Of a DNA stretch of 64,000 nt, positions 1-64,000 are shown one piece after another. The notes under the pieces were generated by a model. That model was given only the letters and a program-made list of their open reading frames with translations, did no database searches and was not told where the DNA came from. A program made the translations under genes and the position numbers. The stretch lies in assembly GCA_020891255.1 (NCBI GenBank), contig BQFW01000013.1, positions 2,294,001 through 2,358,000 of the forward strand. Reading direction: 5' to 3'. Within the stretch, counting starts at the first letter, position 1. Every line of letters starts with the position of its first letter. The DNA is from Entomortierella parvispora E1425 (Eukaryota; Fungi; Mortierellomycota).

Positions 1-2501
1 TTTTGGTGCAAGGGAGAGCAGGCATTGGCAAAACAACGCTCTGCAAGAAGCTTGTCCATGCCCACCAGAATGGACTGTGGAGGAATCTGTTTGATGTCGT
101 ATTGTGGATTCCCTTGCGCAACCTCCGAGGATTTACAGGCAACACCCTCGAGGCTCTATTTCGTGACAAGATTTTTATCGGCCAGGATCGTGTCCAGCGT
201 CAAGAAGCGTTGGCGGAAGCTCTTGTGACTTGTGCTGAAAAGGGAAAGGTCCTTTTCATCTTGGACGGCATGGATGAGATTGTGGCCGATACGGAGAGCG
301 AGGAGCGCCAGACTTTTAGGAGGTTCTTAATGACCCTCCTTGGACAACAATATGTCGTCGTCACTTCGAGACCTTCCGGCGTAGACAGCTCACTATTGCA
401 ATCAACAGATCTGGAACTTGAGACTGTCGGGTTCAGTCAGCAGAATGTCCAAGATTTTCTGGTCAAGGTACTCGATTATGAGGGAGCAACATCGGTTCAG
501 GATTTTATTCGACGAACACCATTGATTCAAGGACTCGTCAACATCCCAGTGCAACTTGACGTGATCTGCTTCAGTTGGGATTCACTTCCCAAAAATGTCT
601 CACACATCACCATGACGGGACTATATCAGCTGATGGTGCAGAGACTTTGCTGCAAGGACGCAGTGCGACTCAAGAAGAAGGCGGGAAAAATATTGCTGAC
701 AGACCAGAGACTTCGCAGTTACGGTCCTAAAGAAATGGAGAATGTGATGGCGACCGAACTGCTGCATCTTGGGTACCTTGCGTTCAGAGGGATGGAGAAT
801 CGTCACCAAATCGAATTCGAAGAAAAGGACCTCCGCCAAGCGTTCAGAGAGCTTCAGGAAAGTTCTGGATTCAACCAGACGCCTACACCTGAAGATCTCG
901 TTGACACTATCAAGCAGACATCATTTTTGAACACGGCTGATGTAGACTTGAGCTCTCAAAACGCCAATTTTCAGCAAGCCTGGCATTTTTTGCACCTGAC
1001 ATTTCAGGAATATTTCGCCGCAACCTGGATAGTTCGCCATTTTACCCTCAGACAAGAGTGCCGCCCAGCCAAAATGATGTCCAGGGAACAATTGGCCGAC
1101 TTTGTTCACCAGCACAAATACAACCCTCAATATGAGATTGTTTGGTCAATGGTAGCAGGGCTGTTGGAAGGCGAGGCTCTGATGGAATTCTTTGGGCTTT
1201 TGCAGGGTGCGCCGCGCGATCTGATAGGAGGACGGCATGTGCTGATACTTGCATCCTGCTTCAACGAGGCACATGGTCGACTGGACTCCAAATATTCCAA
1301 GAAAGTAGACGAGGAGCTTCGGAGATGGCTTCGTTTTGAGATGCAGACACTTGAGCATGACGAAGACAGTGTCAGTAGGTTGGGCAGTCAGCTTTCATTC
1401 CCGGAGGCTTCTCTGGTCAACACACTGGTCTCTGAAAGCCCGTGGAGGAGCACCCTTGCAAGGACACTGGGGACTCGCTCTATAATGTCAGACGACGCCA
1501 TCACCTTCCTAGTCGTTGCACTCGACGACAACGACAACAGAGTGAGGTTTTTCGCTGCCGCAGCATTAGCAGAGCAGCCTCAATTGCCGGGATCATTGAT
1601 CACACCTCTCATTGCTGCACTGAAAGATAAGGATGGGGATGTCAGATATGCAGTGGCAACAGCATTAGGCAAACAGTCTCCGCTTCCAGAATCAGCCATC
1701 CCCGCTCTCGTCGCTGCACTCGATGATGAAGACGAAGATGTCAGGTCCGCTGCTGCATCGTTGTTATCCAAGCATTCAATTTCTCGAGAGACATCCATCC
1801 GGCCTCTCATCACGGTGATCGGTGCTAAAGACGAAGACGCCAACCCAACTGCTACATTGGCTTTGAACAGCATTCATTCCACGGGGCCGACTTTCATCCA
1901 ACCTTCGATTGCGCCACTCAAGAACGAACACGAGGAAGTCAAATTTGCAGTGACATTGAATTTGAGCGAAGAATCTGAGTTGCCAGAATCGCCCATAAAA
2001 TCCCCCGTCGACGCACTCAAGGATGAAAATGAGCATGTCAGATCTGCGGCAGTAAGATTATTGGGCAAACAATTTGAGTTGCCAGAATCAGCCATCGGAT
2101 CCCTTGTTGACGCACTCAAGGATGAAAATGAGGAAGTCAGAATTAGGGCAGCATACGCATTGGGCAATCAATCTGGGCTGCCGGAATCAGCGGTACATTT
2201 TCTCATTGCTCTACTCAAGGACGTCGGCAAATATGCCAGTATCTACGCTTTACAAGTTCTCCGGCAACATTCCCATTCCATATGTTTTGCTTTTCCACAG
2301 CTCACAAAAGATGAAATTACGAGCGTGTATGAGAGCTGTCTATTTCAGTATAGCTGCAGTCATGTTTTATCTTTACAAGTACAAGACGGCAGATTGCGGA
2401 TCTATACAGAGAAACGCAAGATCTCAGAGATCATTGACGGCGACGTGCAGGAGAAAATATTTTCTGCGTTCAGAGCTGTCCAGGATAAACGGGGGTTATA
2501 G
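1..2501 (+). CDS. NLR-like NACHT NTPase + HEAT-repeat protein (paralogue 1; 5' end lies outside the window)
   Basis: Walker A GRAGIGKTT, Walker B LFILDGMDE, NACHT winged-helix motif WHFLHLTFQEYFAA, then about 8 units of a 33-aa (99-bp) repeat LPESAIxSLVDALKDExxxVRxxAAxALGxQ; the frame is open from base 3 to the TAG at 2499-2501. Confidence 0.92.
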   Translation, partial: LVQGRAGIGKTTLCKKLVHAHQNGLWRNLFDVVLWIPLRNLRGFTGNTLEALFRDKIFIGQDRVQRQEALAEALVTCAEKGKVLFILDGMDEIVADTESEERQTFRRFLMTLLGQQYVVVTSRPSGVDSSLLQSTDLELETVGFSQQNVQDFLVKVLDYEGATSVQDFIRRTPLIQGLVNIPVQLDVICFSWDSLPKNVSHITMTGLYQLMVQRLCCKDAVRLKKKAGKILLTDQRLRSYGPKEMENVMATELLHLGYLAFRGMENRHQIEFEEKDLRQAFRELQESSGFNQTPTPEDLVDTIKQTSFLNTADVDLSSQNANFQQAWHFLHLTFQEYFAATWIVRHFTLRQECRPAKMMSREQLADFVHQHKYNPQYEIVWSMVAGLLEGEALMEFFGLLQGAPRDLIGGRHVLILASCFNEAHGRLDSKYSKKVDEELRRWLRFEMQTLEHDEDSVSRLGSQLSFPEASLVNTLVSESPWRSTLARTLGTRSIMSDDAITFLVVALDDNDNRVRFFAAAALAEQPQLPGSLITPLIAALKDKDGDVRYAVATALGKQSPLPESAIPALVAALDDEDEDVRSAAASLLSKHSISRETSIRPLITVIGAKDEDANPTATLALNSIHSTGPTFIQPSIAPLKNEHEEVKFAVTLNLSEESELPESPIKSPVDALKDENEHVRSAAVRLLGKQFELPESAIGSLVDALKDENEEVRIRAAYALGNQSGLPESAVHFLIALLKDVGKYASIYALQVLRQHSHSICFAFPQLTKDEITSVYESCLFQYSCSHVLSLQVQDGRLRIYTEKRKISEIIDGDVQEKIFSAFRAVQDKRGL

Positions 2502-3724: not shown

Positions 3725-4075
3725 AGCGCACGGAGTCCAATGAGTGTTCTGCAACTCTGGGTTAATGCCGCATGCTACCAGTATGAGACGCCAAAGAAGG
3801 AAGCAATCAAGAGGCAAGCGTGGTTTTGGCTGTATGCATCGGTGACAAAACATCACCGAGCACGGAGCGTTAAACACCAAGATGCCTACGGACATGCCGA
3901 CGAGCGCACGGAGTCAATTGAATGTTCTGCAGCTCTGGGTTAATGCCCCATGCAATCAGCATGAGACGCCAAAGAAGAAAGCAATCAGGAGGCAAGCGTG
4001 GTTTTGGCTGTACGCATCAGTGACAAAACATCACTGGGCACGGAGCGTCGAACACGACCAATGTACCTGCATCGA
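3725..4075 (+). repeat. Tandem duplication with a period of about 178 bp
   Basis: GTTCTGCA(A/G)CTCTGGGTTAATGCC...GGCAAGCGTGGTTTTGGCTGTA..CATC.GTGACAAAACATCAC occurs at 3746 and 3924. Confidence 0.8.
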
Positions 4076-8737: not shown

Positions 8738-11602
8738 TTATTTTATCACATATCTGATCAAGTCCCTCAAGCGGATTATCTCCGTTTTCTTTTCTTCAAT
8801 GCCATCGAAAAAAAAGTCGTCCATGTTGGACATATTGATGTACACCATTACATCCTCGGTACCGGTAGCAGGGTCCTTCTTGATATGAGTAACATGTTGT
8901 TCTCCTTTGACACAAGGGAGCTCAATGTGAATACGAAGGATACCTGTGATCTTGTGTCCTCCGGATTTGACAAAGTCCTCCCTAATCCTTGACAGCGATT
9001 TGTACATTTTCTCTCCGTCTGCCTTCATGAATCTGCAACGAATGTCAGTCGAGGTCTCATTCTCTTCATGATGCGACTGGGGTATAGTATTGCTATAAAA
9101 CTTGATGCCCAGAGAGCCAGCGTACTGAGGGTTGGAAAAGAACCATGCTCCATCTTGGCGAGTGCCAGATTTCTCAGCCAGGAGCTTGTTCGATGGGCGC
9201 TCCAAGAGGAGTTGAAGATCGCCCCTAGTGTCGTCCCTTAGTCCATACCCATATCCCTGCGCTGTGTTGATTTCGTTGATCTGAAGCTTCAGTCCCTGGC
9301 ACCATGCAGGCAATTCGATGCCTTTAAGGAAAGGGAGGTCCACCAGATAGAAGTTATTAAATCGCTGTAAAGCCCTCCAGACAAGCGGCTCCAGACAATT
9401 CCCTTTGGCGGATGATTTCAGACCGAGATTTTGGAGGATCTCGTAAAGTTGATGAAGATGGCCCAAAAAGACGAGATCCTTCCCCAACAGTTTTAGCTCT
9501 TCCTCAACAACTTCGACAACGAGCGGCTCTTCCATGAGCCAATTCACACCATCCTTCTGCAATTGCAGACTACACACAGCCTTGTCCACGAAGTCGGCTT
9601 GGGTGCTTATCGAGAACTGCGTCTTGCCCCCATGAAGCTTGTAGGCTAATACCATACGGCCGAGAAGATGCGCGACATCTCCAGTCTCGTCGTCCGTCAG
9701 AAGTTGTCTGACTCCTGCCTGTAGCGACAACTTTGATCGAGCAATCGCCAAATCTACCACTTTATCCAGTTTGGCCTGTTTGGAGCTGTGGGGTTCAATG
9801 TGGCGGCACTCAAACATTTCAGTGACAACACTAGCCGAAAATCGTGCTCTTCCTGTTAATTTCTGGCGCTTGACACGCGGGATCGTACAGTCCGAGATGT
9901 CAACAAGTTCCGATAGTACGTTCTGCACGTCTTCTTCGTTAAACACGGGGAATTGCGTAATTCTGTGGAAGTTTGTGCGCTTTCCGACCGCTGGGTATAC
10001 GTCATCCGCATCCTGCAACGACATCGACGTTCCAAGTACCACCAGCGTTGAACGCATGTGGCTAAGTGTTGCACAAAGGGGCGTGAGGAACCCCCGAAGG
10101 TGGATATCCAGTATGCGACCCTTGCCGTCGAGGATCTTGTTTTCAACAATGGAAGATGGTGCAATAAATGTCCTGGGTAAGATACGATTTCCTGCGACTT
10201 GGGCTTCATCCAGAGCGACTACGAGTCCCAGTCCTCGTTTCGTAAGATATTCAGCCAAGCTCTTCTCCACTTGATGGTGCATGTCAACGATTGTGTCTGC
10301 ATCATACATGCGCAACTTCTTGACTAGTTCTCGGATGGTTATGGCTCCTCCATTGGCCTGTTCGCGAAAGAACTGCAGCGGCTCAAGATTCGGGTCAATG
10401 CTGAAAAGGACCTGAAGAAATAGCCGTCTTGCCAGGAATTCTAGCATGACACGTTCTCCTGCAAGTCGTTTCAGGCGCGTGTCATATTGTACCAGGTCGT
10501 TTAGTGCATTTAGTGCGGGCTTCGGAAAACTTGCGTACATCTGTTCAACATCCTGTGCAAGTGTAACAAAGTTGGGATCCTTGAAGTCAGGCGATGCCAT
10601 GCTCCGTGGGTCACAGCATATGCAATATATAACGAAATGTGTCCTTGCCAGGTCAATCACTGTTGCAGTCTTTCCGGATCCTGATCGACCAACCATGGCC
10701 ACCACACTGTGGCCAGTCGTCCTGCCTACATCGCGTCCAACAATCTCGAGTAGCGTCTTGTTATCGGTCGACATTGGCTGCTTATTCCGTAATAGTCCCA
10801 GCATCGCCGGGCTCATGAGATCCTCTGTTTCACCATATGGCAGGGGTTTCTCATAGAAGGGGCCAAGTTTTTTTTTTTGAGCGGCTACAACTTTCGCTGG
10901 GTCGATATTGTGCTTGACATGCGCTTGACGGCTCTCCTCGACGATTTGTGCCAGCTCACTATAAATGCCCTTACTGGGAATGGCTTTCTTCCGGATAGTT
11001 GACGCTGAATGAAAACGAGAGGAGAAAGAGTATTAGTAAGTATTTACGGAGAGCAGAGGCTTCCTTAAAGAGCGACGCTGTATTCTGGCCCCCAGTTGAA
11101 CATTTTTGTCCAATGAAAAGGCGAGTATACATTTCACCGAAAGGCATACCTGCATGGGCTATGTGAAGCAGCACGAAATGAGGGTACAAATAAAACGAAC
11201 AATTACAACAGCCCTTTACAAATAACCTCATGCGAATGAGAAACGAAGCCTGATGTGTTTGTTACCTTCTGGTGTCGGTGGCGCCTTGACGGCGATGTGA
11301 ATGAAGCCGCTTGCGCCATCAAGGAGCAGATCCTCGCCTTGGAGGCACCAACCAGGGTTGAGCTCGTGTTCTTCCTTGAGATCCTTCAAAACCTGGTCTA
11401 TGACTTCTTTGGATTCATTCACTGAAATGCTCACTTTCCAACGTCTGAGCAGGTCTGCATCGATCTTCTCGAAGGCGTTGGGTTTCTTTTTTATAATTTC
11501 GTCCTTGAGTACTCCAACTGTCTCCTCAGATTGAATCTTGACTGGGAAGGAAGTTGAAGTTGATTCGGTGATGAGAATGCAGTTCAGCGAAAGGAGAACC
11601 AT
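8738..11602 (-). CDS. Crinkler (CRN)-type protein 1: ubiquitin-like header + P-loop NTPase + PD-(D/E)xK-like C-terminus; exons 11602-11266 and 11004-8738 (867 aa)
   Basis: Exon 1 reads LSLNCILITEST..SFPVKI....TVGVLKDEI....LRRWKV....FIHIAVKAP (CRN header). A phase-1 intron G|GTAAC...TTCAG|CG keeps the frame (337+2267 nt). Walker A GRSGSGKT, Walker B VVALDEAQ, and RQDG...SLGIKFY in the tail. Confidence 0.88.
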
Positions 11603-15889: not shown

Positions 15890-18800
15890 CATTTCCATAA
15901 AATTCACGGTTCATTTTTGTTGAATGGATTTTTATGGACGGCCTATGAGGGCGTGTGTAACATAGTCAGGGCCATTGCCAATGGACCGTCAAAACCAATG
16001 AAATTTTGTTTTCGCCCCTTTTTATCCATTATGAGATGATGAGCCACAGTCCCCCCTGACGGTCTGGCATCGTCTTTGATCAACGACTGCCTGTCGAATC
16101 TCCGTACGTACTTCTCTCCTCCCTCCCTCCCTCCCCTCCCCTCTCCCTCCTCCCTCTCCTCCCTCTCTTCCCTTTCCTCTCACTCACTGTTTCTCTGTCG
16201 TATTTTTCATGTCTGCGTGTGTGAGAGCGTGTGTGCGCACGCGCATGTGTATTTTATTAAAAAAAAAAAAAAAAGGAAAAAAAAAAAAACTATGGTTGCT
16301 CTTTTGCTTTCACCTTTCCTTTTCCTTGCTCTTTTTCTTCTGAGCTTCCAAACCTCTTGGAAACCTTTTTGGGCAAAAGCTTGTAGTATGCTGCAATTGA
16401 GCAAGAGTTGCAATCTTCCTTCAGCATGTCCTGAAAGTCTTGAAGAGCTTGTGCAATCATAGCCATGTCAATTGGTGTGTTATCCGGGATGTAGCGCAAG
16501 ACCGATTGAACAATCGTCTTCTTGAATAAGTAGAGACCTGCAAACCCGTTTTTCCCATCAGGGTTAGCCGAATTCTTTTCACTGCGCCATAGATTTGAAT
16601 ACCATGAATCCATCGTCACGACTGAGGGGCTACCATTGACACCATAGAACCACTCTTGCCAAACCCCCTCTAGCGTGTTTGGCCGAGGGACCAACGTGCA
16701 CAAAGGCATGTGCCTGGGCATAGGAGGGTCAACCTCGCCTCTCTCTCTTCTGTAGTGCGCAATTACTACAGCCACAGCTTGGATTTTATCTTGAGTTTTG
16801 ACAGAATGGCCGCTGTCATCATGACAACGTGGATGGATAATGGAAGGAGGAGGAGCGACTAAGCTCGATTCTTCTACCCTCGATAATTGCAGGCTGAGAA
16901 TCGGGGCACCTGGGGCTTCCTGCTCTTTTGACAGCAGACCCAAACGAGGTAGAACGGACCCTTCAGTGATACTCAAGCCTCCTTGTTCTTGTTCTTGGGT
17001 TATAGAGGTCATCCGACCAGCAGCATCTGACAGAGAGGCCGCTAATGACTTCACTAGGGCATCAATCTTGTCATTCACCTTGCCCATACCTTGAACGACA
17101 CCCTCAAGGACATACTGATTACGCTGCTCTGCATGCAAGGCTCGGCGGTCCTGGTAGACTTGGAGCCTCTCAATGTTATCCGAGATCTTGGAGATCGCAG
17201 TGCTCATTGTTTGTTGTCGGGAAGTTTGCTGTGATATGAGGGCATTGGCGGCCTCCAGTTGCCGCTGAATAACAGGTGCCACGGACGTTAGGTTGCTAGG
17301 GCGAAGGGAAGTGTGGGCTAACGTTTCTGCCATCAACTTCTTAAAGGCCAAAAATTCCGGAGACCTGAATACTTCACGCTTGAAAATAGGGTGCCGGGAA
17401 GATTTGTTCTCGGCCAATAAAAAAGACGGCGGCGTCCTGCAGAATGACTTTCCGCAAGTGGGCAAGCAGACAAAGATGCCGTCGACGCGAGATTGCCTCA
17501 TCAGAGAGAACTTTCCGTGCAGCCCTTTTCTTGATTTTTTTTGATCTTAATATTTTCCTCTTGACGTCCGTAGAATATGCTCCGATCCAGCATGATGTTG
17601 TCGATGGTCTGGATCCAGAAAGGGTCGTAGTGCTTTTTGTCCTCAGGATTTGAGCATGCACGTTCAATGAATGGGAAGACCATGCGCTGTAGCTCGAGGT
17701 CTGGAATGACATTACGCTCCAGCCAAAAGTTTTCCGTACGGCCATTCTCAAATCCGGCCATTTGCAACGCCACAGATGCATCGACGCCGTCGAGGTAATG
17801 GGTGATGAGTCGGTTTGTCCCCCAGCCGCCGTGTTTCGATATATCTTCGTGCGTGGCTCCAGTCAGCCGCGCCAAAAAAGCACCCAGTCGTCTACTGAGA
17901 TGGGTTGCTTTGCCTTTGACACCAATGTTGAGATAATCCTGGACCTCGCGTGTCTGCTTGTACTGTGTGGCATATCGTATCTCTGATGTTCGTGTGGTGG
18001 ACTTTGACAACAAGTGATAGTTGACCCAGTCGTGATCTTCTACTCTAGGCGGAGGGGCAGCCGATGAGGAAGTAGGCTAGATAATTCAGATTAGAAAGGG
18101 GTAGAGCCTCACCCAGCTCATAAAATGTACGTCATAATCAAAAAGTTCAAACTTACCAACCAGTACTCAAGCAGATAAAAGGCTAGAGCACCGACAGGAC
18201 ACGCTTCCACGTCTGGGTTTCGTACCACGACATTATATCGGATCTTGCCATTATTGTTCATTTTTCCTTGTCTTGTCATCAAAACCACACCAAGGACGAA
18301 TTTTCTCTCCTGCTCCCGATCTTTCCGCACTGGACGTGCAACATTCTGGCCAAAGAGGTCGATCAATCTCATCCTGCGTGTGGTTTCACTGCGGCACATC
18401 ATAAAAAATCGAAGGGCGGCGTCAGCTCGATGGCGAAGACCAGTTATCACTCGTGTCCATTTGCTCTGTTCGCCCTGTATATTATGGTGCCAAAAGTGCA
18501 CCATTACCATCTTGACATTCTCCAAAGGGTCCTCCTCGACAAAGTTTGCTGAGCCTTGATCGGTATCTGTCGCTCTCTTCGTGACCGCCACTCTTCTTTC
18601 GTAACTCGTAATCAGGTCCCTCAGGTAATCCATCGGCTTTCTCTCGAGACACCTGAACATGACTTTGTTGTCTGGGTCCACACGTTGCTGACGGTAGAGT
18701 TCTCCGATGGCGGATGCGTGTAATTTTACCGTTGAGAGAGACGGTGCATTGGCCGGTAATCCCCTGTCGGAATGACATACATTCTCACCGAGGTCGTCAT

Positions 18801-20041
18801 TGACACTATCGCTGTCACTATCGTTGTCATCATCAGTGTCGTCGCTATCATGACCATCGCTGTCACTGTCACTGTTGTCGTCGCCTCTTTCTCTCTCGTC
18901 TTCAATTGCTTTTTCTTTTCCCGCGCATTCCAGTAGGTAAAATGATGATACCTGTTAACATGGAAGTTGACATAGAGGTCATTCTGATGAGAATACGTAG
19001 ACAATGGAGATACAAAATGTGATTATCGGTTCTTACCCTTGCTTGGGTCCTCTTTCGATGCAGTTAAACAAGTCCAGTAACGCAAGACTTTCTCTTCGAT
19101 GACGTTGGCGTCTGAGTATCCAGCTTCCGTGCACCATTTCTAGTCATTAATGAGTTTATGGGTGTTTGTAGTAGACGAATTAGAAAAAAAAAAAAAAAAA
19201 AAAAGGATAAAGGGCACTGTCAGCCATGATCAGCCACGATCGTACACTTGGCCCAACTTACAGAGAATACGGCTTGATATCGGTCATAGAGTGCACGCGT
19301 CGACGTCTTGATACTTTCCCTTCGCTGTTCGCGGACAAGTTGCATACAGGCCAACTCCTTTTGTCTCAAGTCAAGCTCATGAGCTTGACGCGCCTTCTGT
19401 CCGCATGGAACTGCGCGACAATAGAAGTACTAGACGAGATTCCTTGCGTGTTGTCGTGTTGTCGTGACGCCGCGAGCTCGGACGCGTCGAGTGAATCCTG
19501 CAGGTACAACGAAGCCCAGAGAGATGGAGCATGAGTATATAGGCAAACAGAATGGCATAGAGGCACACAGATGGCACTGTTCATTCCGCAGCATGCGTAG
19601 AGCTGACGTAGTCGAGTCGAGCATTACATTAGATTCACGTTGAGATGAATCGACTTGCTGGGAGCATGGTTGCTGGCCAGTTGTCGGAGGCTCTCGTTTC
19701 TGTCGTTTTCGCGTCCGCTGTTGTTGCTGTTGTTGCTGCTTGGGTTCCTGGGGCGGTTCCTGGTCCTGTTGAGACAATTGATGCTTGGGCATTTGGAGAA
19801 GGTGCGCCAATGAAAGAATGTAAAAGAATGATGTAGCAAATGTGCCGCATGCATGAACGGGCCCAGGCGCCTGACAACCCCCCTTTATTCCCGTGGACAA
19901 AAAGAAAATATCTGTTTTTTGGCCCTTGTTCAATTTCATGGGCTGGTTCATCGGGCCAATAATGGACTGCAGGCGCGACGACGATTGGCCGACTTGGTCA
20001 CGTGACTTTATGGACCGTCAATGTCCAGGAAGCGTCTCATT
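15890..20041 (-). mobile_element. Fungal Crypton (tyrosine-recombinase DNA transposon), monomer 1
   Basis: 4148-bp unit bounded by CATT at 15890-15893 and 20038-20041; near-identical to the next unit. Confidence 0.88.
16290..19792 (-). pseudogene. Crypton recombinase + GCR1_C-like gene, monomer 1 (two extra homopolymer bases frameshift the last exon)
   Basis: Same multi-exon gene as monomer 2, but with T8 vs T7 near 17535-17542 and A6 vs A5 near 17419-17424; these could be real slippage or sequencing error. The start codon is putative. Confidence 0.7.
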
Positions 20042-23000
20042 TCCATAAAATTCACGGTTCATTTTTGTTGAATGGATTTTTATGGACGGCCTATGAGGGC
20101 GTGTGTAACATAGTCAGGGCCATTGCCAATGGACCGTCAAAACCAATGAAATTTTGTTTTCGCCCCTTTTTATCCATTATGAGATGATGAGCCACAGTCC
20201 CCCCTGACGGTCTGGCATCGTCTTTGATCAACGACTGCCTGTCGAATCTCCGTACGTACTTCTCTCCTCCCTCCCTCCCTCCCCTCCCCTCTCCCTCCTC
20301 CCTCTCCTCCCTCTCTTCCCTTTCCTCTCACTCACTGTTTCTCTGTCGTATTTTTCATGTCTGCGTGTGTGAGAGCGTGTGTGCGCACGCGCATGTGTAT
20401 TTTATTAAAAAAAAAAAAAAAAGGAAAAAAAAAAAACTATGGTTGCTCTTTTGCTTTCACCTTTCCTTTTCCTTGCTCTTTTTCTTCTGAGCTTCCAAAC
20501 CTCTTGGAAACCTTTTTGGGCAAAAGCTTGTAGTATGCTGCAATTGAGCAAGAGTTGCAATCTTCCTTCAGCATGTCCTGAAAGTCTTGAAGAGCTTGTG
20601 CAATCATAGCCATGTCAATTGGTGTGTTATCCGGGATGTAGCGCAAGACCGATTGAACAATCGTCTTCTTGAATAAGTAGAGACCTGCAAACCCGTTTTT
20701 CCCATCAGGGTTAGCCGAATTCTTTTCACTGCGCCATAGATTTGAATACCATGAATCCATCGTCACGACTGAGGGGCTACCATTGACACCATAGAACCAC
20801 TCTTGCCAAACCCCCTCTAGCGTGTTTGGCCGAGGGACCAACGTGCACAAAGGCATGTGCCTGGGCATAGGAGGGTCAACCTCGCCTCTCTCTCTTCTGT
20901 AGTGCGCAATTACTACAGCCACAGCTTGGATTTTATCTTGAGTTTTGACAGAATGGCCGCTGTCATCATGACAACGTGGATGGATAATGGAAGGAGGAGG
21001 AGCGACTAAGCTCGATTCTTCTACCCTCGATAATTGCAGGCTGAGAATCGGGGCACCTGGGGCTTCCTGCTCTTTTGACAGCAGACCCAAACGAGGTAGA
21101 ACGGACCCTTCAGTGATACTCAAGCCTCCTTGTTCTTGTTCTTGGGTTATAGAGGTCATCCGACCAGCAGCATCTGACAGAGAGGCCGCTAATGACTTCA
21201 CTAGGGCATCAATCTTGTCATTCACCTTGCCCATACCTTGAACGACACCCTCAAGGACATACTGATTACGCTGCTCTGCATGCAAGGCTCGGCGGTCCTG
21301 GTAGACTTGGAGCCTCTCAATGTTATCCGAGATCTTGGAGATCGCAGTGCTCATTGTTTGTTGTCGGGAAGTTTGCTGTGATATGAGGGCATTGGCGGCC
21401 TCCAGTTGCCGCTGAATAACAGGTGCCACGGACGTTAGGTTGCTAGGGCGAAGGGAAGTGTGGGCTAACGTTTCTGCCATCAACTTCTTAAAGGCCAAAA
21501 ATTCCGGAGACCTGAATACTTCACGCTTGAAAATAGGGTGCCGGGAAGATTTGTTCTCGGCCAATAAAAAGACGGCGGCGTCCTGCAGAATGACTTTCCG
21601 CAAGTGGGCAAGCAGACAAAGATGCCGTCGACGCGAGATTGCCTCATCAGAGAGAACTTTCCGTGCAGCCCTTTTCTTGATTTTTTTGATCTTAATATTT
21701 TCCTCTTGACGTCCGTAGAATATGCTCCGATCCAGCATGATGTTGTCGATGGTCTGGATCCAGAAAGGGTCGTAGTGCTTTTTGTCCTCAGGATTTGAGC
21801 ATGCACGTTCAATGAATGGGAAGACCATGCGCTGTAGCTCGAGGTCTGGAATGACATTACGCTCCAGCCAAAAGTTTTCCGTACGGCCATTCTCAAATCC
21901 GGCCATTTGCAACGCCACAGATGCATCGACGCCGTCGAGGTAATGGGTGATGAGTCGGTTTGTCCCCCAGCCGCCGTGTTTCGATATATCTTCGTGCGTG
22001 GCTCCAGTCAGCCGCGCCAAAAAAGCACCCAGTCGTCTACTGAGATGGGTTGCTTTGCCTTTGACACCAATGTTGAGATAATCCTGGACCTCGCGTGTCT
22101 GCTTGTACTGTGTGGCATATCGTATCTCTGATGTTCGTGTGGTGGACTTTGACAACAAGTGATAGTTGACCCAGTCGTGATCTTCTACTCTAGGCGGAGG
22201 GGCAGCCGATGAGGAAGTAGGCTAGATAATTCAGATTAGAAAGGGGTAGAGCCTCACCCAGCTCATAAAATGTACGTCATAATCAAAAAGTTCAAACTTA
22301 CCAACCAGTACTCAAGCAGATAAAAGGCTAGAGCACCGACAGGACACGCTTCCACGTCTGGGTTTCGTACCACGACATTATATCGGATCTTGCCATTATT
22401 GTTCATTTTTCCTTGTCTTGTCATCAAAACCACACCAAGGACGAATTTTCTCTCCTGCTCCCGATCTTTCCGCACTGGACGTGCAACATTCTGGCCAAAG
22501 AGGTCGATCAATCTCATCCTGCGTGTGGTTTCACTGCGGCACATCATAAAAAATCGAAGGGCGGCGTCAGCTCGATGGCGAAGACCAGTTATCACTCGTG
22601 TCCATTTGCTCTGTTCGCCCTGTATATTATGGTGCCAAAAGTGCACCATTACCATCTTGACATTCTCCAAAGGGTCCTCCTCGACAAAGTTTGCTGAGCC
22701 TTGATCGGTATCTGTCGCTCTCTTCGTGACCGCCACTCTTCTTTCGTAACTCGTAATCAGGTCCCTCAGGTAATCCATCGGCTTTCTCTCGAGACACCTG
22801 AACATGACTTTGTTGTCTGGGTCCACACGTTGCTGACGGTAGAGTTCTCCGATGGCGGATGCGTGTAATTTTACCGTTGAGAGAGACGGTGCATTGGCCG
22901 GTAATCCCCTGTCGGAATGACATACATTCTCACCGAGGTCGTCATTGACACTATCGCTGTCACTATCGTTGTCATCATCAGTGTCGTCGCTATCATGACC

Positions 23001-39700: not shown

Positions 39701-39981
39701 ATTCGCCCTCTCTTTTCCTTCTCTTTGTTCTCCCAGGCGAGATGAGATGGACCTGGGAAGAATTTTTTTTGAGGAAAACAGGTGCGGCAATAATGCCCTC
39801 ACGCTCCTCTCTTTTCTTTCCACTTTTTCTCGCCTTTTTTTTTTTTTTTTTTGTTCTCTCGTACTCTACCTGCCAGCAGCCAGAATATCCAACAACTCCC
39901 AAGGTACTGTGTCCGCAACGGCAAGTCATGAATGCTCAGCAAGCAAAGACTGATATGTGCTTTGTATATAGCACTGTCAAC

Positions 39982-42900
39982 ATGACGCCTTCTGAACACG
40001 AGGCTTTGGAGAAGGCAAAGGATCGTATACAATCTGCTCGAGAAGCTAAACTCACGGTTCCGATGTACTACTGGAGAGCAGTACATGCCCTTAAAAAGAT
40101 CGACAAAAAGAAGGTTGGCGCCGATGCCTTGACTGGCAAGGTCGATGCACTTCGAGAGCTCGCTGAGGTGCTGGATCACTCGGGAGAAACGGGCAAGGCC
40201 GTCGAGTGCAGACAGAAAGCAGATGCCTTGATGTAAGCACCCTTATTCTCGTCAACATCTGATGGGTGTTTGAATGACTCTAAATTGAACCACAATCCAC
40301 GTTAGCCGAGAATTAGGCGAGAACAAGAGGTTTCGTGTATCCACCGCTTCACTGTCTTTGACTGCACCGGTGATTACTCAGGAAGAAGTCGAGACAAAGG
40401 TTGCCTGTATGGTCTCTTTAGAGGGTATGTCTTTATTGTATACTAGCACCAACCCCGTTTTGATCTTTATTAATGTTGTCTTCGCACCTTTTTTATTCAA
40501 AGCCTCTGCCACATGCGCTGCCAACATCTCCTCCACCCCTCAACCGACACCTCCGCCAACCGCTCAAACAATCATCTCTATATCAGTGGCTACCAGTATC
40601 CAGGAATTTACGACGTTCTTCACCAAGGATGTAAATCCTGTACCTATTCATTGTACGCTACCTGGTCCGGATGAGCAATTACAGAGCACCTATCAACTTG
40701 TCTACGGTCTCCAGCTCTTACAGGATTCAGTTCATGAGAAGGATCTTTCTCCTGAAGCTCTCCAATGGCGTCACAGCACTCGAAATAACTTGGATGAGAA
40801 GGATCGCCTGCAGACCATAGCTGTTCAGATTGTCCAGACATTCAGAAGTAATGCTACCAAGGATGCTGCTGCGGTGGCTGAGGTTGTCCAGCTGGCCCCG
40901 GTGCTCGACAGCGAGTATTCCTGGCTCCTCCTCACATCCTTCACCGACGCTATCTGCCAGTCACAGCATTTGCATGTGCACCTAGTGGGAGGGCTGGTCA
41001 ACGTGATGCAAGGAGCAGCTCATGGATCCATCAGCTCAAACGACCTTGTGGTCGTCCTTCAGTCCCTTTTCAAGAAACTCCAGTCGACTCACCCAGAGAG
41101 CACTCGAGATCGACATCACCTGTTGCTTGCAATTTCACAGGTTCTGGATGCAATGGCAGATGCTGATATCGGAAGTCTTGATCGCGACGCTCTTCATGGG
41201 CCATTGAAGGATCTTCTTCAAGGGTTAGAGTCAAGCAAAGACCCCTATTTGACATTCCAAGCCGAGTATGCCACGCAGGCGCTGTTGAACGTTCCAGATG
41301 ACGAGACTGTCCTGAAGGCAGGATTTCGACGATTATGGTCCGGCTTGAAGGTTGTAGCAGGCTTTGCCAACATCTTGGATCCAACAGCGATAAAGGACTC
41401 ACTCGAGGCTCTAGAGAATCTATACGAATCTGGCAATGGAAGCATCAGGCTGCTCAAAGACCTCCATAAAGCGATCAGGAACAATGACCATCCGACATTC
41501 TCTATGAAGAAGGGTCTCAGGTTCAAGAAGGCTTGGTATGACGCCCTTCGCAGAGCGGAAGTATGTATCAAGGCTGGCGGGCTCGTGGAATTCAGAGATC
41601 TGGTCACTACCGCGTCATACCGACACCAATTCGAATTTCAATGGGGAATTTGCCAGCTACTCGGACGATTGGCGGCTGATACTCAATGGGATCTAGAAGC
41701 ACGGAAGGAAGCAGTTGTATTCCTTGGGGAGCTCTACAAGGATTCTGAACTTTGGAATCGGCAGGAAGGAGTTGACCAGGTCATTTTTGATATCCTCACC
41801 AATGTGACTGCCAACTATGGAGCCAACTTTGAAGGTATATCGATCTTATATTACTACACCCAGGTTGCAACCTCTGGGAGTAAGCTACGAAGAATCCTAT
41901 TCCTAACGTTCTTTTTTTTTGGTATTCACTTTTATAAAAATATAAACTAGGCGCCACGTCTTTGCTGAAGGAGATGAGGAAACAGAGCCCAGACTTGAAG
42001 TCATACGTCAATCTACAGTCGCCACTTTGGAACAATTTCCGGCCTTCAGACTCAACTGGCCACACCACTGCAAAGTTCACACTGCTGAAAACTGTCCAGA
42101 TCCAGTACCCTTGGAGACCTCGTCTTTATGGCATCCACAAAGCTCTCAAGGCGTACCACGCACCAGAACTCGTCATCCGCAGAGTTTCGGGAGACACGCT
42201 GGATCTGGAGACATGCTTTGTCAACCTAGCAATTGTCGAAGCACCGGCACATCGGCAAAAGGAAAAAGAGGATCTCAAAGAGCAGGCAGCAATCTTTCAT
42301 CGGCTACAAAGCTTCGAGAGGATTGAAAACACCAACACGGATGCACTGATCCCTTTGGAGCAACTCTTCAACAAGCACAAGCTACTAGAACGCCAAAGCA
42401 ATGAGGGTGAAGACATTCCTAAAAGGATTTTGGTGCAAGGGCGAGCAGGAATTGGTAAAACAACACTTTGCAAGAAGCTAGTCCATGCCCACCAAAATGG
42501 ACTGTGGAGGGATCTGTTTGATGTCGTACTGTGGATTCCATTGCGCAACCTCAGAGGATTTACAGGCACCACTCTAGAATCGCTGTTTCGTGATAAGATT
42601 TTTATCGGCCAGGATCGTGTCCAGCGTCAAGAGGCGTTGGCGGAAGCTCTTGTGACCTGTGCTGAAAAGGGAAAGGTCCTTTTCATCTTGGACGGCATGG
42701 ACGAGATTGTGGCCGATACGGAGAGCGAGGAGCGCCAGACTTTTAGAAGGTTCTTAATGACCCTCCTTGGACAAGAATATGTCGTCGTCACTTCGAGACC
42801 TTCCGGTGTGGAGAGCTCACTATTACAATCAACGGATCTGGAACTTGAGACTGTCGGGTTCAGTCAGCAGAATATCCAAGACTTTGTGGTCAAGGTACTT

Positions 42901-45432
42901 CCTGAAGCAGCAGTATCAGTTCAGAACTTCATTCGACGATCACCATTGATTCAAGGACTCGTCAACATCCCTGTGCAGCTGGACGTGATCTGCTTAAGCT
43001 GGGATTCACTTCCCAAAGACATCTCACACATTACTATGACAGGACTTTATCAGCTAATGGTGCGCAGACTATGCTGCAAGGACGCAATTCGACTGAAGAA
43101 GAATGCTGGCGAAATACTTCTGACTGAGAAATATCTTCGCGATTTCGAACCTTATGAAATCGACGATCTGATGGCCACCGAGTTGCTGCATCTTGGATAT
43201 CTCGCCTTCAAAGGAATGAACAGTAATCATCAAATTGAATTCGAGGACAAGGACATACGCCGTGCGTGTGGGGAGCTCGACGGATATGGTACAGGCGACC
43301 GGCCTCTTAAGCCTCTCGAGCTCTCTGAGATCATGAAGAAGACATCATTTTTGCATTCAGCAGATGCGGATCTGAGCTCTACAAAGGCCAACTCTCCGAA
43401 ATCCTGGCATTTTTTGCATCTGACATTTCAGGAGTACTTCGCCGCAACCTGGATAGTTCGCCATTTCACCCTCAGACAGGAGTGCTTCCCAGCCAAAATG
43501 ATGTCCAAGGATCAATTGGCGGACTTTGTTCACCAACACAAATACAACCCTTAGTATGAGATTGTTTGGTCGATGGTAGCAGGGCTGTTGGAAGGAGAGG
43601 CTCTGATGGAATTCTTTGGGATTTTGCAGGATGGACCGCCCGATCTGATAGGAGGACGGCATCAGCTGATACTGGCATCCTGCTTCAACGAGGCACATGG
43701 TCGACTGGACTCCATATATTCCGAGAAAGTATACGAGGCGCTAAAGAGATGGCTTCGTTTCGAGGTGCAAACACTTGAGCATGACGAAGACACCGCGAGT
43801 GGGTTGGGCAGTCAGCTTTCATTTCCGGAGGCCACTCTGATTGAGACTTTGCGCTCTAAAAGCTCATGGAAGAATACTCTTGCAAGAACACTGGGGGCTC
43901 GCTCTATAATTTCAGATCACGCCATCACCTTCCTAGTCGTTACACTTGACGACAGCGACAAGAGAGTGAGGTCTTCGGCGGCCACTGCACTAGGAAAGCA
44001 GCCTCAATTGCCAGGATCAGTGATCACAGCTCTCATTGCTGCACTGAAAGACGAGAATGAGGTTGTTAGGTCTTCAGCGGCAAGAGCATTGGGCAGACAG
44101 TTTCCACTGCCAGAATCAGCCATCCACCCTTTCGTCTCTACACTTGATGATGAAAACGAAGATGTCAGGTCTGCCGCAGCAAAAGCACTAGGGAAAAAGT
44201 CTACGCTTCCAGAATTCGCTATCCAGGCTCTAATCGCCGCACTCCAAGACGAGTATTGGAGCGTTCGGTTGTCAGCTTTGGAGGCATTCGACAATCAGAA
44301 TACCTTTCCGGAGATAGCCATCCAGCCTACTATCGCTGCTCTCGAGGATCAAGACGAAGACGTGAGGTCTGCTGCTGAGTGGGTGTTATCCAAGCATTCA
44401 ATCTCTCAAGAGACATCCATCCGGCCTCTCATCACGGTGATCGGTGCTAAAGATGAAGACGCCAACTCAACTGCTACATCGGCTTTGGACAGCAATCAGT
44501 TCATGACACCGACTTTCATCGATCCTCCCATTGCTCCACTCAAGCACGAACACGAGGAAGTCAAATCTGGAGTGACATCGAATTTGAGAGAAGAATCTGA
44601 GTTGCCAGAATCGTCCATTGAATCCCTTGTCGACGCACTTAAGGATGAAGATATATATGTCAGATATGGGGCAGCATGGGCATTGGGCAATCAATCTGAG
44701 TTACCAAAATCAGCCATCGGATCCCTCGTTGATGCATTCATGGATGGAGATGAGGATGTGCGTGTCAGAGCTGTAGCAGCAAATACATTGCGCAAACAAT
44801 CTGAATTACCAGAATCAGCGATCGGATCCGTTGTTTCCGCACTCAAGGATAAAGACGAGTATCTCAGATTTGCGGCTGCAAGAGCACTGGGCTGTCAATC
44901 TGAGTTGCCAGAATCAGCCATCGGATCCCTCATTGACGCACTCAAGGATGAAGATAGACTTGTCAGATTTGAGGCAGTAAGAGTATTGGGCAATCAGTCT
45001 GCGTTGCCTGAATCAGCTGTCGGATCCCTCGTTGACGTACTCAAGCATGAAGATAGACTTGTCAGATTTGAGGCAGCAAGAGCATTGGGCAATCAATTTG
45101 AGTTGCCAGAATCAGCGGTACATTTTCTCATTGCTCTACTCAAGGACACAGGCGAATATGCCAGGATCCACGTTTTATAAGTTCTCCGGCAACATTCCCA
45201 TTCCATATGTATTGCTCTTCCACAGCTCACAAAAGATGAAATTACGAGCGCGTATGAGAACTGTCTATTTCAGTATAGCTGCAGTCGTGTCCTATCTTTA
45301 CAAGTACAGGATGGCAGATTGCGGATCTATACAGAGAAACGTGAGATCTCAGAGAACATTGGCAGCGACGTGCAGGAGAAAATATTGTCTGCTATCAAAG
45401 CTGTCCAGGATAAGCACGGGTTGGAGCTGTGA
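39982..45432 (+). pseudogene. NLR-like paralogue 2: TPR-like helical exon + ARM-like domain + NACHT + 13 HEAT units; exons 39982-40232, 40306-40406, 40503-41834, 41951-45432; nonsense codons at 43552 and 45178
   Basis: The splice phases are mutually consistent (AT|GTAAGC, TTAG|C, T|GTATGG, AAAG|CC, G|GTATAT, CTAG|GC). TAG and TAA fall where the paralogues have CAA/CAG, and the frame continues to the TGA at 45430-45432. Confidence 0.86.
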
Positions 45433-59625: not shown

Positions 59626-62600
59626 TCACAGCTTTAACCCTTGTTTATCATGGACGGCTCTCATCGCAGACAATATGTTTTCCTGCACGTCGTTACCAAT
59701 GGTTTCTGAAATCTCGCCTTTATCGGTGTAAATCCGCAATCTGCCATCTTGGACTTGTAAAGATAATACTCGTCTGCAGCTCTGGTAAAATAGACAGCTC
59801 TCGTACACACTTGATATTTCATCTTTCGTGAGCTGTGGGAGAGCAATGCATATCGAATGGCCTTGTAGCCGAAGGGCCTGTGAAGCGTCGAGTCTGGCAT
59901 CTGTGTCTCCATCCTGGAGTAGAGCAATGAGAGACCGTATGGCTGATTCTGGCAACGTTGATCGGATGCCTAATACGTCTGGGGCTATGTTTTTAGAAGA
60001 AGGAGTTCCTTGTTTGATTATAGCAATGAGAGGCTGTATGGCGGTTTCCGGTACAGCTGAATGATTCTTTAAGGCGCTCATGGCTGCAAATCTAACATAT
60101 TGGTGTTCATCGCCGAGCGCAACTACAAGGGACTCGATGGCCGATTCAGGTAACTGAGATTGTTTGCCTAATGCTTCCGCTGCTTTAGATCTGACACTCT
60201 TATCTCCATCCTTGAGTGCATCAACAAGGGATCCGACGGCTGATTCTGGCAACCCAGGCCGATATCCCAGTGCAATTGCAGCTGTACACCTAAAATCCTT
60301 ATTTTCATCCTTGAGCGTGTGAGCGAGGGATTCCACGGCTGATTCTGGCATGTTAGCTTGACTTCCCAATGCTTCTGCTGCATCAGATCTGACAAATCCA
60401 TTTCCATCCTTGATTGCGTCAACGAGAGACTTAACGGCTGATTCTGGCAACTCGGATCGATTTCCTAATGTGTGTGCTGCCATGTGTCTGAAACCCTCAT
60501 TTTCATCCTTGAGTCCCTCAACGATGGAGTGCACCACGGATTCTGTTAACTCAGTTATATTTCTCAATGCTCCTGCTGCTGCATATCCGACAGTCGAGTC
60601 TTCATCCTTGAGTGCGCCAACTAGGGATTGGACCACTGACTCTGGCAACTCGAATTGATATCCTAATATTGAAGCTGCTGCAGATCTGACATCCTTCTTG
60701 CCATCCTTGAGGACCTCGACGAGGGATTGAACCCCTGACTTTGGCAACTCAGATTGTTTGTACAATATAGATCTTGCTTCTTGCCTGACGGCATAACGTT
60801 CATCCTTGAGCACCTCAACGAGGGATTTGATGGCTGAATCTGACAATTGAGATTGTTTGTCTAATACTCCTCTTGCTGCAGATCTGACATCCTTGCGTTC
60901 ATTCTTGAGTGCGTCAACTAGAGATTGCACGACTGATTCTGGTAACTCAGATTGATTTCCCAACACATCTGCTGCCGCCCATATGAACTCCTTATTTTCA
61001 TCCTTGAGTACCTCAACGAGGGATTTGAAGGCTGATTCTGGCAACCCAAATTGTTTCCTTAATGCTCTTGTTGCCGCAAATCGGACGTCCTTGTCTTCAT
61101 TCTTGAGTGCGTCAATGAGGGATTCAATGGCTGATTCAAGCAATTTCGATTGCTCAGCTGATGACGATGCTGCAGCCCAGAAATACTCCGGTTCGCTCCT
61201 GTGCACATCAATGTCGAACTGAAAGCGCTCGCGTACTGTCGATGCCGCTGTAGGATTGACCTCCTCATTCTCATCTGTTTGTGTACCAATGAGAGACTGA
61301 AAGACCAATGGTTGCGCTGCCTTAGAACTGACTTCCTCATCCCCATCCTTGAATGGATCAACGGGAGTCCGGATGGCTGATTCCGGTAATAAATATCCAC
61401 GTGATGCCAGTGTTGTTACAGATCTGACGTCCTGGTTCTCATCCTTGCCTTCCGTGTGTAATGTAGTGAGAAGCCGAATTTTGAACTTTTGAGATTCAAA
61501 TTGTTCGTCGAAAGTCGATGTCGCCGCAGACCTGACTTCCTCATGGTCGTCCTTCCGTGCCGCAATTGCAGGCTGGAGCTTTTTCGGCATCTTGCACCGA
61601 ATATCCAATACAGACGTTGCGGATGAGTTGATGTCTTTGTGTTTAGCCTCTATTACGATGATGGGTTTTTTTTGCGGTATTCCATGCTTGGATAACACCG
61701 ATGCAGCAGCGGACCTGATGAATCCATTGTGATCCTTGAGAGAAGCGACTACAGGCTGGATGGCAGATTCTGGAAACATATTCTGCTTGCCTAATGCCTC
61801 TAGTGCTGATACCCGAGTGAGAAAATATTGTTTTACTTCCTTGAGTACGACGATGAGAGCCTGGATGCCGAATTCTGGAAGTGTAGCATTGTTCCCCAGT
61901 GCGTCTACTGCGGCAAGTCTAACCAAAAAGCTTGTATCTTCAATCGCAGCTTTTACCAGGAGGTGAATGACAGATTCCAGCATCACAGAATGTTTGCCTA
62001 AAGCTTCAGCCGCTGAAGTCCTGATAAACCCATCCTCATCTTTAAGTGCAACAGTGAGAAAATTTGTCGCATCCTCTGATATTATAGAGCGGGCTCTCAG
62101 TGTTCTCGCGAGGGTAGCCTTCCATGAGCTTTCACAGCTCAATGTTGCAATCAGAGAAGCCTCCGGGAATGAGAGTTGACTCCCTAAGCTACTCAGAGCG
62201 TATTCATCATGCTGAAGTGTCTGCATCTCAAAACGAAGCCATTTCCGAAGCTCTTCGTCTACTTCCTCGGCATATTTGGAGTCCAGTCGACCATGTGCCT
62301 CGTTGAAGCAGGATGCCAGTACCAGCTGATGTCGTCCTCCTATCAGATCGCGCGGCGCACCCTGCAAAAATGCAAAGAATTCCATCAGACCCTCTCCTTC
62401 CAACAGCCCTGCTACCATCGACCAAACGATCTCATACTGAGGGTTGTACTTGTGTTGGTGAACAAAGTTGGCCAATTGAGCCTTGGACATCATTTTGGCT
62501 GAGAGGCATTCTTGTCTGAGGTAAAAGTGGCGGACTATCCAGGTGGCGGCGAAATACTCTTGAAATGTCAGATGCAAAAAGTGCCAGGCTTGTAGAGAGT

Positions 62601-64000
62601 TGTTATTTTTGGAGTTCAAATCCACATCGGCCGTGTGCAAAAATGAGGTCTGCTTCATGACCTTGACGAGCTGAGGAGGCAATAGTCGCTGGTTGGCTCC
62701 TGTGTGGACCCTGAGATCACGAAAGGCAGAAAGCAGGTCCTGCTCCTCGAATTCGATCTGATGGTTGTTGCTCATCCCTTTGAACGCGAGATATCCGAGA
62801 TGCAGGAGTTCGGTAGCCATCAACTCATCCACGTCTTCCAGCGCCATGTCGTTGATCTCTTGTTCTGTCAAACTCATTCCACCAGCTGTCTTCTTCAGTC
62901 GAACGGCATCCTTGCACCACAGCTTGCGTACCATCAGTTGATACAGTCCTGTCATGGTGATTGCTAGTCCATCTGTTGGCAGTTTATCCCAGCTGAAACA
63001 GATAACATCCAGTTGTACAGGGATGTTGACGAGCCCTTGGATTAACGGCGTTCGTTGAATAAAATCCTGAACCGTTCTCACGGCTTCAGGCTCAAGAACC
63101 CTGACCAAAAAGTCCTTGACATTCTGCTGGCTGAATCCAACAGTTTCGACTTCCAGATCAATTGGCGGTAGTAGCTTGCTGTCCAAGCCAGAAGGTCTTG
63201 AGGTGATGACCACATATTGTTGCCTGAGCAAAGCCATGAGGAATGATCTGAAGGTCTTGCGTTCGTCACCCTCTGTATCTGCCACAATCTCGTCCACGCC
63301 GTCCAGGATGAACAAGACTCTGCCCTTTCCCGCACAAGTGGAAAGAGCTTCGGCCAGAGCCGCCTGTCGCTGGTCATGGTTCTGGGTGATGAACACCTTT
63401 TCGCGAAATAGACATTCCAGAGTGTTTCCTTTGAATCCTCGGAGTTGGCGGAGCGGAATCCATAGCACGACATCAAACAGATCTCTCCACCATCCATTCT
63501 GGTGAGCGTGGACAAGTTTCTTGCAGAGTGTTGTTTTGCCAATGCCTGCTCGTCCTTGCACCAAGATTCTCTTCGGAACAACTTCCTTTCCATCACGTAA
63601 CTTGCGCTTGTCGAAAAGATGCTCCAACGGGATCAATGCCTCCGTGTTCGTGTTCTCTACTCTCTCAAAGCTCGGGATCCGATGAAAGACGGTTGCCTGA
63701 TCTTTGAGATTTTGCTTTTCCTTTTGTCGATGAGCAGTCGCTTCCACAATTGCCAGATTAACGAAACATGTTGCCAGGTCCAACTCTTCTCCCGAAACCC
63801 TACGGATGAAGAGGTCAGGCGCATGGTAGGTTTTGAGTGCCTTGTGAATGCCAAGTCGAGGCTGCCATGGGTATTGGATCTGAACAGTCTTTAGCAACGT
63901 TGCCTTTGCCGTGACATGTCTAGTTGGATCCAGAGAATGGGTATTGTTCCACAGTGGTGATTTTAGATCGGCGATAGGTTTTAGCGTAGGGTTTTTACAT
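59626..64000 (-). CDS. NLR-like paralogue 3: NACHT + about 23 HEAT units (5' part outside the window)
   Basis: The frame is open from the window edge. GRAGIGKTT, FILDGVDE, HFLHLTFQEYFAA and a long 33-aa repeat array; same C-terminal cap as paralogues 1 and 2. Confidence 0.92.
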   Translation of the reverse strand, partial: CKNPTLKPIADLKSPLWNNTHSLDPTRHVTAKATLLKTVQIQYPWQPRLGIHKALKTYHAPDLFIRRVSGEELDLATCFVNLAIVEATAHRQKEKQNLKDQATVFHRIPSFERVENTNTEALIPLEHLFDKRKLRDGKEVVPKRILVQGRAGIGKTTLCKKLVHAHQNGWWRDLFDVVLWIPLRQLRGFKGNTLECLFREKVFITQNHDQRQAALAEALSTCAGKGRVLFILDGVDEIVADTEGDERKTFRSFLMALLRQQYVVITSRPSGLDSKLLPPIDLEVETVGFSQQNVKDFLVRVLEPEAVRTVQDFIQRTPLIQGLVNIPVQLDVICFSWDKLPTDGLAITMTGLYQLMVRKLWCKDAVRLKKTAGGMSLTEQEINDMALEDVDELMATELLHLGYLAFKGMSNNHQIEFEEQDLLSAFRDLRVHTGANQRLLPPQLVKVMKQTSFLHTADVDLNSKNNNSLQAWHFLHLTFQEYFAATWIVRHFYLRQECLSAKMMSKAQLANFVHQHKYNPQYEIVWSMVAGLLEGEGLMEFFAFLQGAPRDLIGGRHQLVLASCFNEAHGRLDSKYAEEVDEELRKWLRFEMQTLQHDEYALSSLGSQLSFPEASLIATLSCESSWKATLARTLRARSIISEDATNFLTVALKDEDGFIRTSAAEALGKHSVMLESVIHLLVKAAIEDTSFLVRLAAVDALGNNATLPEFGIQALIVVLKEVKQYFLTRVSALEALGKQNMFPESAIQPVVASLKDHNGFIRSAAASVLSKHGIPQKKPIIVIEAKHKDINSSATSVLDIRCKMPKKLQPAIAARKDDHEEVRSAATSTFDEQFESQKFKIRLLTTLHTEGKDENQDVRSVTTLASRGYLLPESAIRTPVDPFKDGDEEVSSKAAQPLVFQSLIGTQTDENEEVNPTAASTVRERFQFDIDVHRSEPEYFWAAASSSAEQSKLLESAIESLIDALKNEDKDVRFAATRALRKQFGLPESAFKSLVEVLKDENKEFIWAAADVLGNQSELPESVVQSLVDALKNERKDVRSAARGVLDKQSQLSDSAIKSLVEVLKDERYAVRQEARSILYKQSELPKSGVQSLVEVLKDGKKDVRSAAASILGYQFELPESVVQSLVGALKDEDSTVGYAAAGALRNITELTESVVHSIVEGLKDENEGFRHMAAHTLGNRSELPESAVKSLVDAIKDGNGFVRSDAAEALGSQANMPESAVESLAHTLKDENKDFRCTAAIALGYRPGLPESAVGSLVDALKDGDKSVRSKAAEALGKQSQLPESAIESLVVALGDEHQYVRFAAMSALKNHSAVPETAIQPLIAIIKQGTPSSKNIAPDVLGIRSTLPESAIRSLIALLQDGDTDARLDASQALRLQGHSICIALPQLTKDEISSVYESCLFYQSCRRVLSLQVQDGRLRIYTDKGEISETIGNDVQENILSAMRAVHDKQGLKL

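Follow-up and report, generated by a model that had tools for sequence, protein, structure and literature searches.

How have the repeat arrays of a receptor-like gene family diversified in an early-diverging fungus, and has selection taken part? The question is raised by a window of 64,000 nucleotides (nt) of contig 13 (C13) of Entomortierella parvispora E1425, which holds three paralogous genes that combine a NACHT domain with an array of 33-residue HEAT-like units. A sequence-only reading of the window had proposed an adaptively diversifying family of NOD-like receptors (NLRs) whose arrays vary in length and at fixed positions. Taken as a whole, the evidence is probably best explained if the three loci are N-NACHT/HEAT NLR-like STAND (signal transduction ATPases with numerous domains) proteins of the Mortierellaceae, serving as diversifying receptors and evolving by birth and death.

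The paralogues in the window share one order of parts, running from an N-terminal ARM_5 domain through NACHT and the HEAT-like array to a 74-residue C-terminal tail. Pfam matches NACHT (E=1e-20 to 4.6e-19) together with HEAT_2 or HEAT in 3/3 copies; HEAT_2 matches reach E=3.8e-63, and many HEAT-type families match within exon 3, while ARM_5 (PF23948) is found in exon 2 (E=8.8e-58). The ATPase motifs are intact, with Walker A (GRAGIGKT), Walker B (LFILDGxDE) and the sensor TSRP legible in the translations. The three-part layout of NLRs, namely effector, nucleotide-binding oligomerization domain (NOD) and superstructure-forming repeats, is seen in the copies and in the annotated full-length products P0026 and P0001. 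For a NAIP-like third domain (HETHS), Pfam gives weak matches only, to NLRC4_HD2 and NOD2_WH, both at E=0.0019 and below cut-offs. The helical ARM_5 domain spans ~600 residues and is presumed, by analogy, to be the effector or signalling part. These domains, in a member of the Mortierellomycota, bear out the earlier description of NLR-like NACHT-HEAT genes in an early-diverging fungus.

Units were counted with a hidden Markov model (HMM) trained on LPES-anchored units. Copy 1 (forward strand) starts upstream of the window, and the part of its exon 3 within the window occupies 1..2501 (open reading frame (ORF) 3-2501, with NACHT starting right at the edge of the window and a stop codon at 2499-2501). 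Its sequence matches the annotated product P0026 (1594 aa), and Pfam finds NACHT at E=4.6e-19 and HEAT_2 at E=7.6e-29. The array (1497..2276) has 8 units: three N-terminal, two degenerate units forming a "kink", two canonical and one cap. The 74-residue tail (2277..2498) is conserved in an alignment of 47 sequences (A1) and confidently predicted in an AlphaFold2 (AF2) model described below. A 178-bp tandem duplicate lies directly downstream of copy 1 (3725-4055).

Copy 3 (reverse strand) extends past the window end. Its exon 3 (59626..64000; ORF 59626-63897) has an intact frame, and the locus is 100% identical to the annotated product P0001 (1806 aa), with Pfam matches to NACHT and HEAT_2 (E=3.8e-63). 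The array (59857..62076) comprises about 22-23 units, made up of four N-terminal units, a degenerate centre of ~180 residues and 13 units including the cap; the HMM recognizes 21, the gaps being occupied by two or more further degenerate units. Tandem Repeats Finder (TRF) reports a period of 99 at 60502-61137, and the conserved tail occupies 59629-59856.

Copy 2 (forward strand) lies wholly within the window and was modelled by analogy with annotated copy 1 and from splice signals. The predicted exon 1 (39982..40232, within ORF 39742-40236) ends before a donor GT at 40233. Exon 2 (40306..41834) encodes the ARM_5 domain that gives the Pfam match cited above, and is followed by a 116-nt GT...AG intron 2 (41835-41950). 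Exon 3 (41951..45432) would encode NACHT, helical domains, the array and the tail (45202-45429); it has two in-frame stops, and the ORFs 41962-43554 and 43573-45180 share its frame. The array (43921..45201) has 13 units, of which five are N-terminal, two degenerate, five canonical (one of 35 residues) and one the cap, with a TRF period of 99 at 44594-45117. The central degenerate stretch, the divergent last unit and the 74-residue tail are thus common to all three copies. The sequence-only reading had described three paralogues sharing NACHT, kink and cap, with arrays of about 8, 13 and 23 units; Pfam and the unit HMM agree with it, and its array coordinates are reproduced to within 30 nt.

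What the units hold constant and what they vary was established from 62 canonical 33-residue units, drawn only from seven paralogues of the C13 cluster and numbered from the L of LPES, in agreement with the numbering of the alphaRep repeat proteins. The framework residues L1, P2, S4, L9, L13, D15, R21, A24 and L28 are present in 87-100% of the units, and entropy is highest at positions 26, 19, 7, 18, 22, 33 and 23. The earlier description of a constant framework with variation after KD, after VR and around AA is recovered as positions 16-19, 22-23 and 26. In the alphaRep library, the randomized positions 18, 19, 22, 23, 26 and 30 form the concave binding face (PMC3754942). Five of the seven most variable fungal positions (26, 19, 18, 22 and 23) belong to this set, with position 30 being intermediate.

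The correspondence extends to sequence and fold. The unit carries the signature KD-x4-VR-x2-AA-x-ALG and a helix-turn-helix solenoid, which assigns it to the alphaRep/PBS-lyase type of HEAT-like repeat, and the array matches alphaRep chains with phmmer at E=2e-43. The last three copy 1 units and the tail were modelled with AF2 from alignment A1 (47 rows, including bacterial homologues), with a predicted local distance difference test score (pLDDT) of 93.9; in this model helix A spans unit positions 4-12 and helix B positions 18-29. Foldseek superposes this model on alphaRep chains with a root-mean-square deviation of 2.6-4 Å and 37-39% identity; VIA gives Z scores of 11-12 to alphaRep, YibA and CpcE. 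When the copy 1 array is modelled in full from its sequence alone, AF2 gives a poor result (mean pLDDT 57), which was used for the helix pattern only, not for the kink. Given the extent of helix B, the variable positions, spaced i, i+1, i+4, i+5 and i+8, share one face of that helix, on which all six randomized alphaRep positions are located. This face is predicted to be the concave binding face by homology with alphaRep (PMC3754942), not from coordinates, and the proposal that the second helix provides the binding surface accords with it. The tail (74-76 residues), conserved across A1, is confidently predicted to consist of two helices, a three-stranded sheet and one more helix. It matches no Pfam family, and Foldseek and VIA returned no separate fold match for it, as the HEAT part dominated the matches.

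Compared with alphaRep and other PBS-lyase-type HEAT-like repeats (PMC3754942; PDB 3LTJ and 4JW2), the fungal unit has the same fold and a near-identical consensus from position 3 on, but consists of 33 residues rather than 31, the two extra residues lying in the inter-repeat loop. Unlike alphaRep, it is also variable at position 7 in helix A, and the fungal arrays are joined to a NACHT ATPase, contain a degenerate central stretch and end in an alpha/beta tail. The positions that vary most in the 62 units also do so in 165 units collected across the E. parvispora genome and 274 units of other Mortierellaceae, and in units of Glomeribacter, Mycoavidus and unnamed homologues. The pattern is therefore a property of the repeat class across kingdoms, and is not specific to this locus.

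For tests of selection, the test class consisted of the six alphaRep positions, fixed in advance to avoid post-hoc site choice; the comparison is among paralogous units of one E. parvispora genome, not among alleles. Under a GY94-type codon model with a fixed nucleotide tree and a shared synonymous scale, the ratio of nonsynonymous to synonymous rates (dN/dS, omega) is 1.81 for this class and 0.54 for the rest, with twice the log-likelihood difference (2dlnL) from omega = 1 being 31.9. Giving the class its own rate scale yields omega 2.24 (2dlnL 17.7), and a tree built from framework codons only yields 2.0-2.9 (2dlnL 9.0-27.4). Omega exceeds 1 in all four combinations of model and tree (1.41-2.89), and random six-site framework sets give 0.34-0.80. 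Site by site, omega is 3.1 at position 26, 2.7 at 19, 2.2 at 7 and 2.1 at 22, and 0.0-0.7 at framework sites. A parsimony analysis resembling single-likelihood ancestor counting (SLAC) points in the same direction, with best p values of 0.04-0.06 that are not significant after correction for 33 sites. A pairwise expectation weighted by the transition/transversion ratio was rejected as too liberal at saturated codons, and for this reason the closest pairs were relied on: a tree-free comparison of these, 13 disjoint pairs of units, gives dN 0.48 and dS 0.20 for the six sites, a ratio of about 2.4, and a dS of 0.16 for the framework. The framework is under purifying selection, and replacement on the helix-B face is estimated to be faster than the synonymous rate. 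These results suggest, but do not prove, diversifying selection at the helix-B sites.

The arrays also differ by whole units, as had been proposed. Nucleotide identity between copies 1 and 2 is 85-95% over most of exon 3, and their alignment contains only two sizeable gaps, of 198 nt (two units) and 303 nt (three units, one of them the unit of 35 residues). As the gaps correspond to whole units, they represent copy-number changes in register. Unit counts in four more C13 paralogues are 16, about 27-28, about 20 and about 17; the degenerate stretch is absent from one of these paralogues. Some adjacent units, such as two in the p2149 paralogue, are near-identical, indicating recent tandem duplication of single units. 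Based on framework nucleotides, the closest relative of a unit lies in its own gene for 23/62 units (10.7 expected), which shows that duplication or homogenization occurs within genes; for many units the closest relative occupies the matching place in another paralogue.

The three loci belong to a larger family in the 38.9-Mb, 20-contig E. parvispora assembly, which contains at least 30-40 NACHT matches, grouped on C13, C1 and C6. Exon-3 open frames range genome-wide from 996 to 2442 aa, corresponding to arrays of roughly 8 to 50 units, and interrupted or shortened frames and stops are frequent among these relatives. The tandem cluster on contig 13 consists of about ten genes, including the three window loci. 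In an unrooted NACHT-region tree of 110 homologues, all Mortierellaceae proteins form one clade with 100% support. The C13 members P0001, P0012, P0009, P0026, P0002 and P0006 form their own clade within the tree, also with 100% support, which indicates a lineage-specific tandem expansion; a second E. parvispora cluster forms a separate clade. Seven proteins of the same genome (P0002, P0003, P0011 and P0017-P0020) carry the NCBI name "bilin biosynthesis protein", yet are NACHT-HEAT proteins. The name is misleading, and most likely derives from a match to PBS-lyase HEAT-like repeats.

In the part of their account that treats this family, Bonometti et al. (PLoS Genet 2025, PMC12258605) define N-NACHT/HEAT NLRs and count 26 in E. 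parvispora. The architecture is the same, a NAIP-like NACHT followed by HEAT repeats, and the window loci are annotated proteins of the same genome; assignment to the N-NACHT subtype is putative here, by architecture and species. Where that part of the paper addresses domain assortments and NACHT types, the present analysis also covers unit copy number, site variability and HEAT-unit dN/dS. A long helical N-terminal domain has been described as common to Mortierellomycetes, Pezizomycotina and Mycoavidus (PMC9815663). The family, its count in E. parvispora and its link to endosymbionts are thus already in print, and what the window contributes is further detail, not a system of a new kind.

A further close parallel is Podospora anserina, in which the WD40 genes het-e and het-d, ANK and TPR genes, and the NACHT gene Pa_6_7270 gain and lose whole units, as do the arrays here. 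Pa_6_7270 has 33-residue HEAT repeats, equal in length to the present unit, which number between 3 and 12 depending on the isolate (PMC4986451, PMC13449251). Hypervariable or positively selected sites map to a concave binding surface there, and the variable sites of the E. parvispora units are predicted to do so from the alphaRep homology described above. The N-terminal domain differs, being ARM_5 here and sesB-like, HET or PNP_UDP in the Podospora NLRs, as does the phylum, and the variation described here is among paralogues, whereas in Podospora it is among alleles.

By analogy with such receptors, the concave face of the solenoid, formed by helix B of successive units and its residues 18, 19, 22, 23, 26 and 30, would bind a ligand. 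Binding would free NACHT for oligomerization, and the N-terminal ARM_5 domain would then signal. The family itself evolves by birth and death, with local gene duplications, frequent pseudogenes, probably copy 2 among them, and in-register gain and loss of units.

Several points weigh against reading these loci as receptors under diversifying selection. The significance of omega > 1 is model-dependent and not robust, 2dlnL ranging from 2.5 to 32; with class-specific codon frequencies and the all-site tree, omega is 1.41 and 2dlnL 2.5. A single tree is a poor model for 62 recombining 99-nt units, and in many pairs the variable codons approach saturation. Recombination among repeats can inflate omega tests. 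As the units compared occupy paralogous positions in different arrays, omega > 1 may reflect old divergence between units and not an ongoing arms race. Internal conservation of the arrays, 69-78% in nucleotides (TRF) and 0.65-0.75 in protein (against a per-gene consensus), is below that of the Podospora genes with active shuffling: the nucleotide matches compare with a cut-off of over 85% for high internal conservation in that species (Dyrka 2014), and the protein values straddle the threshold of Psim >=0.7 used in PMC13449251. Ligand binding, oligomerization and a role in cell death are attributed to the family by analogy, and the activity of the N-terminal domain is presumed.

Copy 2 belongs on the same side, as it is probably disabled. 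Its stops, TAG at 43552-43554 and TAA at 45178-45180, stand at sites occupied in six paralogues by CAG or CAA (by GAA in one), and were overlooked in the sequence-only reading. The sequence is otherwise well conserved, which suggests a recent pseudogene. Both stops correspond to C-to-T changes at CpA, yet the lineage-specific substitution spectrum is unremarkable, and disabling by a process like repeat-induced point mutation (RIP) was rejected. The earlier claim of adaptive diversification is upheld in one part and qualified in another. At the alphaRep sites dN/dS exceeds 1 in every model, and the variable sites lie on one helix-B face, neither scattered nor buried, with omega of 1.4-2.9; significance depends on the model, the pattern is general to the repeat class, and the observations do not amount to proof.

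The variation might instead be neutral, affecting exposed, unconstrained positions of a generic alphaRep-type repeat, with copy number changing through unequal recombination in a decaying family. The same positions do vary in other Mortierellaceae, in endosymbiont and unnamed homologues and in the natural source family of alphaRep (PMC3754942), and decay is visible in the many loci with shortened frames or stops, as in the two nonsense codons of copy 2. One reasonable model, that with class-specific codon frequencies, gives an omega that is not significantly above 1. Strict neutrality, however, predicts an omega of 1, and relaxed constraint a value below 1, whereas omega at the preselected sites is above 1 in each of the four combinations and in the tree-free comparison. 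In the closest pairs the variable codons differ between near-identical framework codons, which is hard to account for without selection for change. Neutral scaffold variation is therefore considered unlikely, though it deserves serious weight.

A different possibility is that the family takes part in the relations of the fungus with its Burkholderia-related endobacteria rather than in pathogen sensing, and that the homologous proteins of the two partners might regulate or mimic each other. Glomeribacter and Mycoavidus genomes encode NACHT-HEAT homologues (PMC9815663, PMC11291939) aligning over ~90% of the query at 36-40% identity; their 33-residue units vary at the same positions, and some of the proteins carry ARM_5. 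Strain E1425 hosts Mycoavidus sp. B2-EB (PMC8759367), and for NOD-like receptors a transfer from Mycoavidus into Mortierellomycota, with a possible role in symbiosis, has been proposed (PMC11291939). The bacterial genes are intronless and fall outside the well-supported Mortierellaceae clade of the NACHT tree, which, being unrooted, gives no direction of transfer. Homologues also occur in ascomycetes without such endobacteria (Colletotrichum, Fusarium), and a receptor that senses an endobacterium would still be an NLR-like sensor, so that this possibility is compatible with NLR-like diversifying receptors as the best explanation. As a replacement for pathogen sensing it appears quite improbable. 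It is tempting to speculate that host and endobacterial proteins co-evolve as receptor and mimic or decoy, the HEAT surfaces recording a contest between host and endosymbiont, and that bacterial copies could, for example, titrate or poison host receptor complexes; this is a long shot.

Other features of the window lie outside the three loci. Two reverse-strand ORFs of 692 aa (8738-10816 and 54799-56877) are 96% identical without gaps and have a P-loop (GRSGSGKT) near the N-terminus. Neither matches a Pfam family, and the pair, placed between the NLR copies, has the appearance of a dispersed repeat or of an unknown ATPase gene that was recently duplicated. A tandem duplication of ~4.15 kb spans 16118-24000, in which the TRF arrays 16118-16185 and 19537-19576 recur at 20266-20333 and 23682-23721, respectively. 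A GCR1_C domain is encoded by an ORF of each duplicate, to which the second ORF adds NDC10_II, a pairing that suggests a Crypton-like or domesticated recombinase gene. Two very long ORFs, 24633-28442 (forward, 1269 aa) and 32168-36154 (reverse, 1328 aa), match no Pfam family, the latter lying in a stretch of raised G+C (0.55-0.57). Within the reverse-strand ORF 29640-30731 lies a minisatellite rich in GTG (30091-30518), its periods being 48 and 108 nt.

If diversifying selection at the helix-B sites is real, the Mortierellomycota would possess a repertoire of receptors based on a natural binder scaffold resembling alphaRep. The combination of repeat shuffling and hypervariable sites known from Podospora would then hold for HEAT repeats and for a phylum of early divergence as well, and the natural sequence diversity of the units would offer a guide for binder design. 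As endobacteria have the family too, these proteins are candidates for work on the sensing or tolerance of an intracellular bacterium by a fungus.

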